DNA of 64,000 nt. Origin: Vitrella brassicaformis CCMP3155 (Eukaryota > Protista > Chromerida). Position numbers and translations under genes: made by a program. This document shows, piece after piece, positions 22,469 through 63,186 of the stretch. The notes under the pieces are model-generated. The model worked only from the letters and a program-made list of their open reading frames with translations, ran no database searches and was not told where the DNA came from. The stretch's first letter is position 1. Every line of letters begins with the position of its first letter. Location of the stretch: positions 62,001 through 126,000 of the forward strand of contig CDMY01000149.1 of the NCBI GenBank assembly GCA_001179505.1, written 5' to 3'.

Positions 22469-24601
22469 ATGGCAGATCAAAACGAGGGTCCACCGATGAA
22501 ACGGCAGAAGGCTGCGGAGACTCTAATAGCTCGAGCGGGTGGGAGGGGACAGGACGATGCAACGGGTCAGACTAAACATGGGGAAGGACGTGTGTGTGGT
22601 TTGTGTTCAGGAAAGGAGGCTCGTCCGAAGCTCGAACTCTGTGCTGCAGACCTCGTGAGTGTGGAAAAGCTCACGGACAAAGGTGCCCAGCGTGAGTCGA
22701 CAAAGGTGCCCACCCTCAACCAACAGCAGCCTGCGAAGAATGTCCCGAAAGACTACGTCGGTTTCAAGGACCTGGAGACGATGGTGGATGGCAAAATCAT
22801 GGAGGGATACCAGTTGATGGACACACCGCACGAGCGCGTGGGCCCAGCAGTGCTTACAAGATTCGCGAGAGGCGGCAAGACACGGACACTTCAAGAGATC
22901 GGCAAGATGCTTCAGGAACGGCAGATTCCTACTCTCTTCATCACCTTCAACGATCTCACTGCGATCGACAATGATGAGCGTCAGAACATCACCGCACTGC
23001 AGTCCGTCTTGATGCGCATTGCATGGGGGGCAGCGACAGAAGCTACTGTTCAAAAGGTGATAGAAAATGCGAAAAAAGCCGGCACTTCCCCAACCGCGCG
23101 CAACTGGACCGTGAGCAACTTCGACTTCTCCGAATGGATCCAAGCCGCTTGTATACGGTCGGTCAATCACAGATTTGAAAGACCGCTGATATTGACTCAT
23201 CTCTCTCTTCTTGTTTGTCTTTATGTGGTGTACGTTGATTGTAGCAAAGACGAGGTCGAGGCGTGGCTTCAGGATCAGCCACTCATCCTCCTTATCGACG
23301 AGTTCAATCAGCTGCTGACGAAGGACCTTTTGGACGAGCTGAAGATGGCTGACGAAAACACACTAGCGAGGGAGTCAGACCAGGCTGAAGAAGTTGCTGC
23401 TTTCATCTCGAAGTCATTCCTCAAAGCCGAGCTGTCGTTTTTTGGTGTTTTCCAGCCATGTCGTGACGGTGGGAGATGGGCTTGAGGACTATTGGGGACG
23501 AAGCAGAAGCGGCCGACTTGCTAAGAAATTGCGAATCCCAGTGATCAAGCAGCTCGAGGACGCACGTCTTATCACCTTATGTGCTGACGGAGGACACATC
23601 TGCTGGACGGGGCGAGCACCAGCACTGTTATTCCAGCTATTTCGTAACAGTCCTAAGTGCGAAGCCCCAAGACCGTCTGACGTCACGCGCCACTTCTCCG
23701 CAGCTCCCACCATCAGTGCCGACACTGTCAGAGCTCTAGTGCAGTCAGCACTTAAGGGGGATGCGACTCGGGACTATCTTCTTGCTCTCGGTGCCATGCT
23801 GGCGGACGTTGACGTGTTTGATTCCAAATGCGTCTGGCCCCCTTGCTATTTGGGTGAAGCTTGCAACAAGGCGTCAGACTCCAAAGGCGTCAAGACGACC
23901 CTCGGCATGGAATTTGCCTCCGGCATTGGAGAAGTCGACGCGTTGCTCAAACAACTACTAGGGGACACTTCTGGAAAACAATGGGAGGGTGTCAGCGCTG
24001 CGGCGGTCCTCCTTCGACTGCTGGACAGCCACATAGCGCTCACCTACCTTCATGGACCGCCTCTGCAGCTGCCGGAAAATTCGGAACGCCTCGTGCCAGA
24101 CCCGGTCGTCACTGGATGCGCGTTTGGATCGTTTGTGCGTGTTCCTTCTAAGTCAAACCTGAAGGAGCTCCTCTTGTGGTGGCTAAACGAGAGACAGCCC
24201 GAGACGAGAGAGGGGCAGAGGTTTCTCTCGTATCTGGTCAAACCAACTAACACGCAGTTCGAGGGTTGGGACTTCTTCGTCTTCATCACCATGGACGGGC
24301 GCCTGCGTGACGTCTGGGGCTACCAGTGCAAGCAGGACAATACGAAACCGACGACCGCCACGACAAGCACGATTAAGAAGAGCCTGAAAAACGTCAAGGG
24401 CGACGAGCAGCTGAAGGCATTAGGCATTGCGGGCGCCAGAGTGTGGTTGCAAGGTGTATGGCCATCAGACGGATAAGATGGATGAAAAAAATCGAAGACT
24501 GGCCACTGTACTACCCTTGCAATGCCACGCTCAGGGAGTTTCTGGGCGCCTCACTGAGTGAAGCGTGCCCGTCGGAGTTGTTGGATGTGAAAAAGAACTA
24601 G
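22469..24601 (+). pseudogene. Crinkler-like P-loop NTPase + PD-(D/E)xK restriction-endonuclease-fold gene, copy 1, with two apparent frame disruptions
   Basis: Walker A-like TRFARGGKT, Walker B LILLIDE and nuclease motif FEGWDFFVF..VWGYQCK. Alignment with the paralog at 52-54.6 kb needs frame changes near 23421-23437 and near 24450-24476. Confidence 0.7.
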
Positions 24602-24705
24602 AGAGGGCAAGCGATGCTGAACGTTCCTGATGTTGGTAATCCAGACATTAATTCCTTCACCCATGAAAAGCAAGCCGTGAACCATGCATGAGTCCGCTAC
24701 TCGAA

Positions 24706-27700
24706 TTAAGATTGCGTCAACCCTTCCCTTTCTCCACTCGAAGAAGCTGCGCTCGAACCACCGCCCTGCGCGCAGCATCCTGTCTTCCGCGGTCCTCGTG
24801 CCGCATCGGACAGGTTCACTCTCCCTCGGCCTGTGCTGTCTGATTCGCTGGCCCCAGCACCACCGCCAGAAAGCTGCAACGACTTCGTTTGCACTGCATT
24901 CTTCCTTCTGTGAAAACACAGCAACAAGACGTTGCTGAAAGACATGCTGTGTGCGGCTATCCCTCACCTGAGGTCAACAAGTTTGGCCGCAGCCGACAAG
25001 AAGGCATTGTCGACGTTGGACGCAGTCTGTCATGTTATTGCATTTGCCAAGAAGTGTGCAACGTTGTACGTTGTCGTTGAATGATTGGAAAACTTCGCCC
25101 ACCTTGGCAGATGTATTCACGAAGATCGCGCCGATGCGGTCCGCACACGCCTGCAGAACAGGGGATAACGACGTTATACTTGTCACAGAGCTGCGTAATC
25201 CTACCGGTGTGTGGAACTTCCTAACCTTTGCTTCTTCCTCAGACACTTGGATCTGGTCCTTCAAGTCATACTTGTTGCCAACGAGGAGTTTCACCTGGGC
25301 AGAAGACGCATCGATGTCTTGTGTTTGCAAATCAGACGAGACAGCACATGAAAAGGAATCGAGTACCGTTGACGGGCCGCAGTCGTGATGCTCCTGAATC
25401 TGCAATACAGCTCCCCATTTGATCGTGTGCCCACCATTTTCCTCCCCAATAGGCCTGCCCGAAGTACCTGGTTCAGCCATTGGTCCACGTGGTCAAAGGA
25501 TTCTCTGCTGGTGGCATCGTAGACGAGAACAAAGCCATCTGCGTTGCGGTAGTAATTGCCTGTGACGACGCTGAACCTTTCTTGGCCTGCAGTGTCCCAC
25601 TGCGAAGACAACCAAATCCGACAGTCCAATCAACCAGCGCAGCTGCCTACCAGCTGCAGCTTGACGAGTTTGCCCTTGATCATGGTGACGACTGTCTTGA
25701 AGTCGACGCCAATCGTTGACACGTGGAAGTCCGAATACACGTCCTAGGGGAAGGGGTGATGAGCAGGATGGCGAAGAACAAGCGTGACAAGCCTGTGCCC
25801 ACGGCCTTTCTCAGAATGCGTATGACCTGGACAAAACGGGTGAGAAGACAGCTCTTCCCAACGCCAGAGTCCCCCACTGTCACGAGTTTGAACTTGAAAT
25901 CACCGTCACCCTAAAGAAACAAAAGGTTGGTGCGAAGAAGAGCACTTTCACTTTCATCATCGTGTTTGAACATACCGCGCCGTCTCGAATCTGCAAACAA
26001 TCGACAGAAAAAAGGGAAGGGGCGGTGACCTACTTGTAGGAAATGCTGGAAATCGCGTCTGTACCTGGAGTACATTGAGAAAGAACAGTTTCCTCGAGAT
26101 TCGCTGTCCTGGACCACCTCCGTCGTCGCCTGCAGCAGCTCACGTCAGACAGAGGTTGGCGGCACTTCTCTTCCGAACCTAGTGCATCTCCTTTCTGTTT
26201 TGTAGCCTCAGTCTTTTCCCTCGATCCACCGAAGACGATGAGCTTGTCATGCAACACTGTACTGCAGTGGGACTTCACATTGATTTGCCCTGAAAAGTGG
26301 ACAACCATCACTTATCAGGTGGTTACTAGTGGCGACGCCTGGCGACTGACCTTCGTACAATGGTCTGCTCCATTTGCTTTTCGCAGAATCGTATATGTAC
26401 AAATCAGAAACTTCCGCTATCGTCTTGAATATGTACCATGCAATAGAGGAATGGAGGGGGATGGGGGCCCTTTGTGACGACTATGATTCTTACTTGGCCC
26501 GCAAATATGAAGACTCTGTCGCCTATTAAGTCCATTGAATGGAAGGACCTCGACAAGGGGGCCGTGTTTGCAACTTCTACTCGACTCCTGAGGGTATTGG
26601 TCACCGAGTTTTTTCTCGAGTTTCTGCTCACGATGACTCGCTGCTCTGCTTTCTTCTAAGCTGCTTGCCCTTACCAAACGTACTCGCCCTGCGTCGCCAG
26701 ATCCAGAGAGAACAAGGCACCGTCGTCCTCAGCTCCTCTGCGTGGTGACCACACAAACACAACACTGTCTGTATGATCGTGGTTTGTCCATTTCCATTGC
26801 TCTCTACCCGAACAGCAGAAGTTTGTCTTGGAAGCAGACGGTTTTGTGACCGTACCTAACACGAAGTAGGCAATCTCGCAACGAGAGAAGAGCCATGCGC
26901 TTGGGTATACCGCGCCGAGGGGACTTCCCCAGTTTGGCTTGGTTGCTGCCATGCTGACTTCCCGAGGTCCAGTATCCAAAGCTCATTTGATGCCTGGTAA
27001 AAGCAAAACGGCCGTTGAAGCAAGCAGCACCCTGACACCTTCTCACCTGGGTAAGGTTGGCGTCCGTGGCACCTCCGAAAACGACTAGCTGGTTCTTGAA
27101 GACTGCAACACATGCAACGGCTACTGGTGTACTTGATTGAAAACGGTCCAAAAAGTCGCCGCACCTGAGGCGGAGTGAAAGGCTCTTGCTGGCGGCATTG
27201 GTCCAGTGATCTCCGGCTGCGTCCACACGAGGGTGCTTGTTTGCAGCAGGAACAGATCGCTGACAGTTCATACATGGGCCATCCACATGGACAGTAAGTG
27301 GAGAAACGAAATGAGCCCGCTCTACCTGGATGGTGACCCCTGATGGGCCCATGGGCGAAGGCGCGTTGAAGCCGAGCCAGCAGTCGGAGCCATAAACGGT
27401 GGAGGAGGGAAGCTCTTCTGCAGTTGCTCGTCTAGCATTATCTCTGAGTCCTTCATTCAAACAAGACACACAGCCCACTCTTTACAGCTTAAGAGACCGA
27501 CTGGCGCAGCGAGTGGTGCATACCTCTTCTGCGAGCCCTCCAAAAAGAACCAGGGACTGAGTATCGGGGTGAGCTTGCAGAGAGTGGCCATAGCGTGGCG
27601 TCGGCTTGCTGAAGCCTCCAACATTCAGCTCCTTCCATGATGCCTTCTCTGTGAGGCCACTCACACCCACAAAGAGCAAGTACGCAGCCCTCTTGCTGGA

Positions 27701-27966
27701 CAGTCTGCGCTCACCGATCTCCATCACATGCAAATCACCATAGGCGGCCTTCTCATCGGCGCCTCCGTGAAGGTAGAGGCGTGTCCCCACGGTCACAATC
27801 TTGTGCAAATACAAAACATGCCACAAGTGCAGTGCAGACGAGTTTGGCCCGCCTTTCTGCATCGCTGTACCTGGCTGGCAACCCTAGCAGTCGGAATATC
27901 TCCATGCTGGCGAAGGTCACAGACGGAGAGGACCAGGTTTCTGACGTTCTGGGTCTCGTCCGCCAT
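24706..27966 (-). CDS. Kelch-repeat beta-propeller (six blades) fused to a C-terminal Rab1-like small GTPase
   Basis: One continuous GT-AG-spliced ORF. Kelch blades: RLYLHGG, RYGHS..LVLFGG, RAFHS..LVVFGG, RYGHK..LLLFGG, RSFHS..VFIFAG and SHCS..LIVFGG. It then runs [10 protein letters not shown]|IRDGA|[30 protein letters not shown]|[23 protein letters not shown]. Confidence 0.85.
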
Positions 27967-28158
27967 CTCGCTGGGTCGCTGTTGTCACAGGGCGAGATGC
28001 GCCTGCTGACGCCACTGAGCAAACACGATCACCTGCAAACGGAAACAGGAGGGTTGTGCCATACGCTTCTTGCCCGCTCCTTCCCTCACCTTTTCACTTG
28101 CTCATCCGCTACTTGCTTCATCAGCCGATCTACGCAAAACACCTAAAACCCTGAGCCC

Positions 28159-28209
28159 TAACTCTAACCCCAGCGTAACTCTAACCCCAGCGTAACTCTA
28201 ACCCCAGCG
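28159..28209. repeat. 17-bp tandem repeat x3 (TAACTCTAACCCCAGCG) in the divergent promoter region between Kelch-Rab and RPL7
   Basis: Three perfect adjacent units at 28159, 28176 and 28193, preceded by AAAACCCTGA. Confidence 0.9.
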
Positions 28210-28246
28210 AAACACTGATTTGCTGTGTGCTGAAACGGCGAGGGGG

Positions 28247-29549
28247 ATGGCGGATCTTCTGATAAAGCCCGAGCATGGAGCGGCTGGTACACTCTCCGAG
28301 AGCCGGAAGAAGAAGCTGGAGCGCAACCGGGTTCTGGCGACGCAGAAGAATACCGCCATCGCCGAACTGAAGAAGGTAGATACCAACGCTACGAACACAG
28401 GCGAGTGTGTGATCATCTCTCTTTGATTGCGCTTGCTACCGTCAGAGGAACCGCGAAACTCGAGAGGCGCTCAAGATCCGGACTCTCCAGTACGAGGAGG
28501 AGTACCAGACTGAGCAGGAGAACGCACTCGCCCTTCGCAGGTCGGTCGACATCAAGATGGCACCAGATTGCCGCACTTGATCTGGCCGTTTCTTCCAGGG
28601 AATCTCGTGCCGAGGGGGGCTTCTACAAGGAGCCGGATGCGCAGCTCATATTCGCCATTCGCATCAAGGGGTGAGTCGCGCAGGCAGGCAGCCTGCCGTT
28701 TCCTGCGTTCCATGTTTGATTCTGGATCCTTCAGTATCAACAAGCTGGCTCCGAAGCCTCGCAAGGTCCTTCAGCTGTTCCGCCTCCTGCAAATCCACAA
28801 CGGAGTGTTCATCAAAGTGAACAAGGCCACCACCGAGATGCTCAAGCTGATCGCTCCCTTCGGTCAGACGTGCCAGCTGGGCAGAGAACTACACCTGGTG
28901 ACGGTTATTGAATGCTGTCCCTTGATTGGCCTGATTGCGCACAGTTACGTACGGCTATCCGTCTCTGAAGACGGTGCGGGAGCTGATCTACAAACGGGGA
29001 TACGGAAAGGTCAACAAGCACCGCATCCCCCTCCAGGATAATCAGATCATTTCTGAAGCCCTTGGCAAGGTGAGGCTGGAAATTATCCAACGCATCCTCT
29101 GCTCTCGCGGTATGTGTATGATTACCGTGTACGTGTGGCTGACCAGTATGGCATCCATGGTGTGGAGGACCTCGTGCACGAGATCTACACTGTCGGCCCC
29201 CATTTCAAGGAGGCGAACAACTTCCTCTGGTAAGTCAGTCACCTCACTCACTTGCCTTGCAAAGATCTCCGATCGATGAGTCAGCCAGTGCCATGTCCTT
29301 TATGGTGCTGTCTGTGCCTTCCCTGCTCTAACATAACAGGCCGTTCAAGTTGAATTCGCCGAGGGGAGGTTTCGTCGCCAAACGCCACGGCTTCACCGAG
29401 CCTCGTGGCGGCGACTGGGGCAACAGGTCAGACTGACACGACAGAGTGCCTGTTTGCTGTGCGGAAATACTTCCCTCTACTGCCATGATTCTGTCTATGT
29501 TCAATGCAGGGAGCTTCTCATCAACAGCCTGCTGACCAAGATGATCTGA
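28247..29549 (+). CDS. RPL7: 60S ribosomal protein L7 (uL30), multi-exon
   Basis: [19 protein letters not shown]|[74 protein letters not shown]|PFKLNSP..GGDWGN|RELLIN..KMI*. Confidence 0.97.
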
Positions 29550-61167: not shown

Positions 61168-63186
61168 AGGCATGCACACTCACACACACATACCAAGCTA
61201 TACATACGTGTAGATGGACGACTCAGATATCCATTGGTTGGGGTGTGTGAGTCAGGTGAGGTGAGATGGGCTGAGTTGGGACGGGGGTGGGAGGGGAGGG
61301 CGCCTGTGGGTCTGTCGGTGTGTGTGTGTATATAATAGGACGGATAGGGGATAGATAGAGGGAAAGGAGTGGGGCCAGGGAGGGAGGGAGGGAGGGAATG
61401 CGCCTGCGGGTGCCTGCATGGAAGCACCCTTTCCATCCGAGTAGTCAGTCAGTCAGTGCCCTGATTTGCGGCCCCAGTGTTGTGTCTAGTTTACATTCTC
61501 CGTTGCTGTGGGTCGATGGGTGCTTGGCTGGGGGGATTGCCTGTCTGTCTGTCTTGTCTGTCTGTGTCTCTCGTGTGCATATGCGCCCGCCTGACTGACT
61601 GACTGATTGTTGTGGGAAGGAAGTGGCTGAGTGAGTGGACGGAGTATACAGAGCCAGACCGAGAGAGGGGGAGGGGTGAGGGGGGAAGAGAGATACGGTT
61701 GATTGCATTCATTGTAGCTGATAATGGTAAGAGTGACCACCAACATCCACACCTGGTACGCCTGCCTGCCTGCCTTTAGTCCATGTTGAAGAGTGAGTGT
61801 TCAAGAGAGAGATAGGGAGACGGACGAACGGAGGGAGGGAGGGACGCATGGCATGCGTGTGTGCGGAGCTACCTACGTACAGTCAAGAGACGTCACAAGT
61901 TTTGGCGCGGGGGATGGTCAGTCAAAGTGAAGACTGACAACGGCACACAGGTTGATTTCACCCATGATCGATCCACCCATCCATCGTTCGTCGGCCACAT
62001 CCACCATACACCGTCCCGTCCATCCATCCATCCGTCTGTCACTAGGCCACGAAGAAAGAGTAAGTACATCCGTCAGTCAGTGCCCGCTGCCGATTCAGAA
62101 ATACAACCATAGCCTGCAGAAAGAGAGAAATAGCGGAGAGCCAATAGATGCATGTATGTATGTAGCCAGGTAGGTAGGAAGTATGCAACCGGACGCAATC
62201 AGAGCTTAAAATGAAAGGACAAGGAAGGAAAGTCACCCAATCGTACGGACAGGCAAGGACAACGTACGCTCGCTATGGAGTCATTCATGGATGCGATGCA
62301 TGTGTGTGAATGGATGTGTGTACGGTAGGTACGTGTGGTGAACACGTCTGTCTGTCTGTCTGTCTGTGCAATGCGACCGGCCACACTGCTCATGGCCCAT
62401 CGATCGATCTAGGTACGTAGCTGGGAAGAGAGAGGCACGACACACATATAAGAGCACTGCACGGCTACACAAGTGAGTCAGTGAGTGAGCAAGCAAGTAC
62501 GTACTCAGGGAACCAACCGGCACACGTCTCACTCTCTCCCTCTGTCCGTCGGTCTGTCTTTCCGTCTCTCTGTGCGCAAGTGTCTTGAGTGCGCCACATG
62601 GGCTGTGTGCACCCGCCGCCTTCGACGCTCACCAAGCAGCATTCAGTCATACCGCTGGATGGGCGTGGTAGGGGGCGAATATAAACAGGCCCACGTGGCA
62701 CTCACAGAGGCGAGTATCTACGTATGTGAGGATGAATTGGAGCATGCTGGCTACAACACGCCAGCCAACTGATCTATCTGATCGATCTGTATGTATGCAT
62801 CGTTGGTACGTACCTACGCCTGCGCCGTGAATCGTCAGGTCAGCTGCCGCCTCGTGCACGCGTGTTCGGAGACATCCTCAATCTGCGACAGACAACAATC
62901 ACCGCCGACCTCTCAGCGCTGATCCTCGTCTCCGAGCACATGCAGAGGATGCATCCCCACACACACACACACGTCGCAGGCAGCACCACCGGCCCACCAC
63001 AACCAGGGGTAATACAATACAATCACATGACAGAAAACTAAGGCACAACACCACACAGACAGCAAGACACTCACTCACTCACTCGCACGTCCATCCATCC
63101 GGCATCGCATCCCTCTAGAAAAACATCCCATTCTCGCCCCATTCTCGCCCCTGTATCTTGCTTGTATCGTTCTCTCTTTTCCTCCC

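Follow-up and report, generated by a model that had tools for sequence, protein, structure and literature searches.

A Kelch propeller fused to a Rab1-like GTPase in Vitrella brassicaformis, a probable member of an old family of large Rabs in Myzozoa

Rab GTPases define membrane identity, and nearly all are stand-alone proteins of ~200 amino acids (aa). The gene described here, referred to as Kelch-Rab, encodes a Rab-like GTPase behind a Kelch propeller, and lies in a stretch of 64,000 nucleotides (nt) from the Vitrella brassicaformis CCMP3155 genome (assembly GCA_001179505.1, contig CDMY01000149.1, forward-strand positions 62,001–126,000; hereafter the window, in whose numbering all positions are given). 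Its coding sequence occupies 27966–24706 on the minus strand, exactly the interval in which a sequence-only reading of the window had placed a six-blade Kelch propeller fused in frame to a Rab1-like GTPase. It is divided into 22 exons, which join into a 1854-nt open frame encoding 617 aa, with no stop but the terminal one, running from an ATG at 27966, with an upstream in-frame stop six codons before it, to a TAA at 24708–24706. All 21 introns are GT-AG, with lengths of 49–87 nt. This exon model combines the listed transcript joints and contig pieces with the closest GT-AG sites, and its length equals the ATG-to-TAA distance in the transcript contig’s own coordinates. A Pfam scan of the open-frame pieces placed Kelch families at 27883–26033, followed by the Ras family at 25910–24977, both on the minus strand.

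Nine public runs matched the stretch, four of which, from three studies (X1, X2, X8 and X9), contain ~39% of its words, as spliced RNA would. Each of these four holds one ~4.2-kb contig that is spliced over the whole gene with zero letter differences. At least 15 of the 21 splice joints are seen directly in the transcript contigs, including the Kelch-to-Rab link with its linker exon and microexon, while the remaining six were deduced from contig pieces, the contig’s own coordinates, and identity with a public protein. The predicted 15-nt microexon (IRDGA) is real, because joint 25911/26065 holds 14 extra letters, in all four runs, that match the reverse complement of 25990–25976. The canonical splicing read from the sequence, microexon included, is thereby borne out; of the proposed direct connection between blade 6 and the Rab domain via this microexon, the in-frame link stood and the directness did not, as a 65-nt exon (26129–26065), encoding the last propeller strand, intervenes. 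An early manual model, in which the blade-6 exon was joined to the microexon via a donor near 26143, was ruled out by the joints, which place the donor at 26179 and reveal the extra exon.

Assembled contigs generally cannot prove a single transcript, and the same contigs extend ~1.9 kb past the stop codon, which would suit a Kelch gene adjoining a gene for a small Rab, the two only seeming fused through read-through or chimeric assembly. Against this, the junction is formed by precise GT-AG splicing via the linker exon and the microexon, with no intergenic sequence; as had been claimed, no stop or separate start lies between the domains, and the frame stays open through both the spliced model and the transcript joints. 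The P-loop exon begins right at its acceptor and has no ATG, and the fusion recurs in dozens of species, in independent genomes and transcriptomes. A stand-alone Rab starting from ATGs near 25960 was also considered, and has no joint in its support. With contigs of four runs spliced across junction 25911/26065, the precise removal of introns across the domain boundary is therefore strong evidence for a single mRNA rather than two, and a pair of separate genes is so improbable as to be in effect already refuted. The Kelch and Rab parts are one expressed gene, one spliced mRNA and one protein.

The fusion is already public as an uncharacterised gene model. Comparison with the V. brassicaformis CCMP3155 protein P0169 (“unnamed protein product”, 600 aa) revealed that all 600 aligned residues are identical to the 617-aa model, and that the two differ only by 17 residues in exon 12 (26179–26230), which are missing from P0169 because the annotation splices this exon at an inner GT donor, 26230. 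The donor used in each of the four transcript contigs is 26179, and the mismatch stems either from alternative splicing or from an error in the annotation.

A search with exon 17, which encodes switch II, recovered ~17 clusters of 460–770-aa proteins in which the Rab match falls within the final third. Kelch and Ras domains are both present, and in the same order, in 16 of 18 aligned sequences, and later in 77 relatives, a recurrence that speaks against a chance pairing. Named members from this search comprise the “Ras family protein” of Toxoplasma gondii and Hammondia (771 aa), together with Cardiosporidium, Lankesteria and Ancora. A full-length member, used in a word search, brought in Chromera velia, V. 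brassicaformis, Neospora, Besnoitia, Eimeria stiedai, Cyclospora and Porospora, as well as Perkinsus marinus, two Amoebophrya, Noctiluca, and many proteins from marine transcriptomes. Proteins of Plasmodium, piroplasms, Cryptosporidium and ciliates were not among the best 120 word-search matches, which is no proof of their absence. In a tree made by a quick method, with a midpoint root and long gregarine branches, the members from coccidia, from chromerids, and from perkinsids, syndinians and dinoflagellates group separately; the tree groups by organism, and therefore fits vertical descent. Kelch-Rab is a genuine “large Rab” family of Myzozoa, probably an old one, represented in chromerids, coccidia, gregarines, perkinsids, Syndiniales and dinoflagellates.

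Within this family, Cardiosporidium cionae has two paralogues, P0212 and P0045 (655 and 566 aa), that are sisters in the quick tree. The exon-17 search also found another Rab fusion, P0081 (530 aa), in which MSP (major sperm protein) domains precede the Rab domain. In addition, P0171, P0225, P0236 (Rotaria), P0001 and P0243 (Tulasnella), of 600–990 aa, carry three or four tandem Rab domains, and the proteins of Rotaria and Tulasnella may be true tandem fusions or merged gene models.

The implied rarity of the fusion thus does not hold, as the architecture is conserved across Myzozoa and was already in public protein databases, where its members are labelled “Ras family protein”, “Uncharacterized protein” or “Rab-1A”. 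The sequence-only reading had allowed that the architecture might belong to a widespread named family: it is widespread, with Kelch and Ras together across Myzozoa, but it carries no name in the searchable literature. Nor does that literature describe this large, atypical Rab, as had been supposed: no named or studied Kelch-Rab was found in the searchable full text, and a mention in a Rab phylogeny outside it is possible. The architecture is therefore widespread and in databases, without a name or function in the searchable literature. In a study of 12 Toxoplasma Rabs, three Rab-likes were set aside (Table S2), and a link of these to Kelch-Rab could not be made (Kremer 2013; PMC3591302). A Neospora segment named “NcRab1A” in an earlier supplement is the Kelch-Rab G domain (Langsley 2008; PMC3317772). 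TgRab1A was considered as a Kelch-Rab, and ruled out, being a small Rab with ~20 extra residues.

The Rab domain is complete, as first read: the G1–G5 boxes are intact (GDSGVGKS, the switch-I Thr, WDTAGQE, NKYD and SAK, in exons 15–20), and the P-loop, switch-I Thr, DTAGQE, NKxD and SA(K) are invariant among the 77 family members. The RabF motifs of exons 16 and 17 are IGVDF, KLQLW, RFSVVT (altered), YYRNA and LVYDAT; judged by eye against the canonical motifs of the literature, RabF1, F2 and F5 are close to them, and F3 and F4 differ. Overall, the protein retains its Rab-family motifs along with the hydrophobic triad (F, W, Y). The intact, invariant G boxes suggest that the GTPase is active.

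The proposed likeness to Rab1 agrees with several comparisons. The best matches of exon 17 among solved structures are Rab1A, and the whole P0169 G domain scores 170–180 bits against Rab1A, Rab1B, Cryptosporidium Rab1a and Ypt1, compared to 165 for Rab8A, with Rab2, Rab14 and others lower. Foldseek aligned the G domain of the predicted structure to Rab1a at TM 0.89–0.94 and 50% identity. Between family members the G domains are 68–81% identical, whereas the nearest stand-alone Rabs reach at most 58%, which sets the domain apart as a group of its own next to Rab1.

The six-blade Kelch propeller, likewise as first read, is indicated by both Pfam matches and the strand pattern of a predicted structure. 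On P0169, Pfam found the Kelch domain PF24681 at 4.9e-59 and Ras at 1.3e-56, with Kelch_1, 2, 3, 4 and 6 over their cut-offs; BTB and BACK gave no match, and neither did COR, F-box, SOCS-box, LRR or kinase. AlphaFold2, with the 77 relatives in its input, gave a compact two-domain model (pLDDT 85.6, pTM 0.83), comprising six four-stranded blades, of which blade 6 is completed by the N-terminal strand 11–18; a long strand (345–356), followed by a ~10-residue gap and Rab strand beta-1 (366–373); and a tail that is disordered past residue 555. Across the 77 members, conservation is 0.82–0.87 over the N-terminal strand, blade 6, linker strand and Rab domain (0.84–0.87 without the Rab domain), and falls to 0.51–0.59 in blades 2–4 and 0.35 in the blade-2 insert. 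As conservation peaks in the part of the propeller adjoining the G domain, that part may be functionally tied to it, and the two domains would be coupled.

Among solved chains, the propeller is closest by sequence to the LZTR1 Kelch domain (3.5e-29), then to FBXO42, KLHDC3, dynein heavy-chain propellers and KLHDC2. By Foldseek, LZTR1 Kelch domains again come first (E = 6e-25, TM 0.81–0.82), ahead of KLHDC2, KLHDC3 and KLHDC10, with TM 0.8 to six-blade Kelch domains. The effector role first proposed for the propeller, by comparison with the Rab9 effector RABEPK/p40, stays an analogy: RABEPK came up in none of the searches, and LZTR1-type propellers offer the better-supported parallel. As the LZTR1 structures matched are complexes with GDP-bound KRAS, MRAS or RIT1, the propeller might bind a Ras-like G domain, either within the same molecule or on a second one, in a nucleotide-dependent manner, leading to self-inhibition or dimerisation. 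This is decidedly unlikely: the lead of LZTR1 over KLHDC2, KLHDC3 and KLHDC10 is small, at an identity of ~20%, and, from general Kelch topology, the last propeller strand should exit opposite the usual ligand face. Given this exit and the 10-residue linker, the G domain of the same molecule would probably fall short of the ligand face.

In the C-terminal tail, a Cys at P0169 position 578 is conserved in 97% of the 77 members, mostly within CC or CxC. In Vitrella this Cys pair is followed by 21 residues, and a di-cysteine prenylation motif at the very end was not found; the corresponding extensions are 45 residues in Chromera, 17–61 in coccidia, and 6–17, Gly-rich, in most dinoflagellate members. 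A classical Rab di-Cys C-terminus occurs in only 12 of the 77 (CC, CXC or CCXX endings). Anchoring is uncertain in Vitrella, Chromera and coccidia, because the Cys pair there is internal. The dinoflagellate tails consist of the CC or CxC pair, a Gly-rich stretch and a terminal Arg or Lys, a pattern that is not known as a Rab prenylation signal.

Such tails raise the alternative that Kelch-Rab is a soluble signalling or adaptor protein rather than a membrane-trafficking Rab, with a G domain that regulates the attached propeller intramolecularly, as Roc does in Roco proteins. The 21 to 61 residues after the Cys pair in Vitrella, Chromera and coccidia are in keeping with this, as are domains that look rigidly joined (short linker, pTM 0.83), and the substrate receptors LZTR1, KLHDC2, KLHDC3, KLHDC10 and FBXO42 as closest solved propellers. 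However, the conservation of Cys 578 in 97% of members, together with the classical CC, CXC or CCXX ends in some, suggests that the ancestor had a lipid anchor; the hydrophobic triad and Rab-family motifs are retained; and a COR, BTB, F-box or SOCS-box part is absent from the Pfam matches. A soluble adaptor is on this evidence somewhat unlikely.

We consider it probable, instead, that Kelch-Rab is one nuclear gene with one spliced mRNA, encoding a 617-aa “large Rab” from an old, vertically inherited family of Myzozoa, and consisting of a propeller, a ~10-residue linker, a Rab1-like GTPase and a tail with a Cys pair. Several points weigh against this account. The transcript data are assembled contigs only, in which rare isoforms are lost and transcript ends are not visible; the G domain is assigned to Rab1 by a similarity ranking, not a Rab-wide tree; the pTM of 0.83 is an indirect sign of fixed packing between propeller and Rab; the internal Cys pair fits poorly with the usual Rab geranylgeranylation and membrane-bound Rab cycle; and no experiment on any family member was found in the searchable literature.

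In such a large Rab, the G domain would go through the GTP–GDP cycle usual for Rabs in the Rab1/Rab8 group. The propeller, if rigidly attached, would act as a built-in protein-binding platform, and the recruitment of a partner or cargo would therefore be tied to the switch in one polypeptide, with the Cys pair providing lipid anchoring where it is terminal. A further, speculative extension, unlikely as a whole, is that Kelch-Rab has been a self-contained switch-plus-effector since the ancestor of Myzozoa, with an LZTR1-like propeller held rigidly on a Rab1A-derived G domain, reading its nucleotide state or presenting cargo. The prenyl anchor would have been replaced in several lineages by an internal Cys pair and Gly-rich tail, and the protein would serve a group-specific trafficking step, for instance at the apical complex, the alveoli or another secretory organelle; Plasmodium, piroplasms and Cryptosporidium would have lost this step.

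Table 1. Exons of the Kelch-Rab coding sequence, with the parts of the protein they encode (positions in the window)
Feature	Position	Strand	Evidence
Exon 1: start codon and N-terminal strand closing blade 6, start of blade 1	27871–27966	-	Transcript piece 27871–28028; upstream in-frame stop; strand conservation 0.77–0.92
Exon 2: Kelch blade 1	27715–27799	-	GT-AG borders; Kelch_4, Kelch_3 matches
Exon 3: Kelch blades 1 and 2	27524–27648	-	Transcript piece 27523–27648; Pfam Kelch match
Exon 4: poorly conserved insert within blade 2	27326–27450	-	Transcript piece 27326–27449; family conservation 0.35; pLDDT 65–82
Exon 5: Kelch blades 2 and 3	27165–27259	-	Transcript piece; Kelch_3 E = 3e-6
Exon 6: Kelch blade 3	27047–27102	-	Joint 26992/27046; GT-AG borders
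Exon 7: Kelch blades 3 and 4	26911–26993	-	Transcript joints; exon model
Exon 8: Kelch blade 4	26808–26855	-	Transcript joints; exon model
Exon 9: Kelch blade 4	26675–26737	-	Transcript joints; exon model
Exon 10: Kelch blade 5	26494–26587	-	Transcript piece 26494–26586; Pfam Kelch match
Exon 11: Kelch blades 5 and 6	26351–26423	-	Transcript joints; exon model
Exon 12: Kelch blade 6	26179–26289	-	Transcript piece 26178–26288 in 4/4 runs; comparison with P0169
Exon 13: linker exon, 65 nt, conserved last propeller strand	26065–26129	-	Joints 26128/26178 and 25911/26065; strand conservation 0.78–0.99; AlphaFold2 strand 345–356
Exon 14: 15-nt microexon (IRDGA), propeller/Rab boundary	25976–25990	-	Letters inside joint 25911/26065, 4/4 runs
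Exon 15: Rab strand beta-1 and G1 P-loop (GDSGVGKS)	25827–25910	-	Ras family match; P-loop invariant in 77 members
Exon 16: switch I, G2 Thr, RabF1 (IGVDF)	25651–25743	-	Ras family match; T399, D403 invariant
Exon 17: G3 (WDTAGQE), switch II, RabF3–F5	25468–25599	-	Ras E = 1.3e-16; best solved matches Rab1A; transcript piece
Exon 18: Rab helix 3 / loop	25367–25399	-	Transcript joints; exon model
Exon 19: G4 (NKYD)	25226–25294	-	Ras family match; N482, K483, D485 invariant
Exon 20: G5 (SAK)	25103–25150	-	S512, A513 invariant
Exon 21: Rab helix 5	24968–25026	-	Transcript joints; exon model
Exon 22: disordered tail, conserved Cys-Cys, 21 further residues, TAA	24706–24907	-	Transcript piece 24400–24907; C578 conservation 0.97; pLDDT <50

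The exons are listed in Table 1. Past the stop codon, the run-on of the transcript contigs enters a neighbouring region that holds a convergent open reading frame of 360 aa (23394–24476, plus strand), without a Pfam match when scanned; the part below 24400 is also covered. This reflects either overlapping 3' ends of two convergent genes or a merger made by the assembler. At the other end of the gene, the contigs go 10–49 letters beyond 28028, and in some runs depth returns at 28068–28300, a pattern that suggests an intron in the 5' untranslated region or an additional upstream exon. Just upstream of the 5' end, at 28159–28213, a 17-bp unit (TAACTCTAACCCCAGCG) is repeated 3.2 times, with telomere-like pieces of the TTAGGG type on the opposite strand.

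The significance of Kelch-Rab lies in the permanent joining of a protein-binding propeller to a Rab1-like switch, in a fusion that would have persisted from the common ancestor of apicomplexans and dinoflagellates onwards. It could mark a trafficking step specific to Myzozoa, and its mostly non-terminal Cys pair raises the question of how Rabs are attached to membranes. The family is represented, by XP_002367251.1, in the genetically tractable T. gondii, yet is omitted from Rab surveys in the searchable literature, and Rab catalogues of these organisms miss or mislabel the gene, as with the Neospora copy listed as “Rab1A” in 2008.

Several known systems resemble Kelch-Rab in part. Roco proteins also carry a Ras-like domain within a multidomain protein, some of them together with Kelch repeats (PMC6320773). 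The Pfam Roc model matches the Kelch-Rab G domain too, but at 107 bits, compared to 191 for Ras/Rab; and whereas Roc is followed by a COR domain, the G domain of Kelch-Rab is followed by a disordered tail, without COR. LZTR1 is the best solved match of the propeller by both sequence and fold, and its propeller too works with Ras-like GTPases. It differs in its BTB-BACK part and its role as a CUL3 substrate receptor, the identity between the two propellers is ~20%, and KLHDC2, KLHDC3 and KLHDC10 score nearly as high.

Stand-alone Rab1 shares all G boxes and ~50% identity (Rab1a) with the Kelch-Rab G domain, the difference being the ~375-aa propeller in front and, relative to stand-alone Rabs in general, a Cys pair that is mostly not terminal in the family. 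The large Rabs (Rab44, Rab45/RASEF and CRACR2A) likewise carry their Rab domain at the C-terminus, after a long stretch that holds other domains. These are animal proteins with N-terminal EF-hands and coiled coils where Kelch-Rab has a propeller, and no homology is implied beyond the Rab domain. A propeller working with a Rab is also found in RABEPK/p40, a Rab9 effector with Kelch motifs, which is a separate protein, whereas in Kelch-Rab the propeller and the Rab are fused in a single polypeptide.

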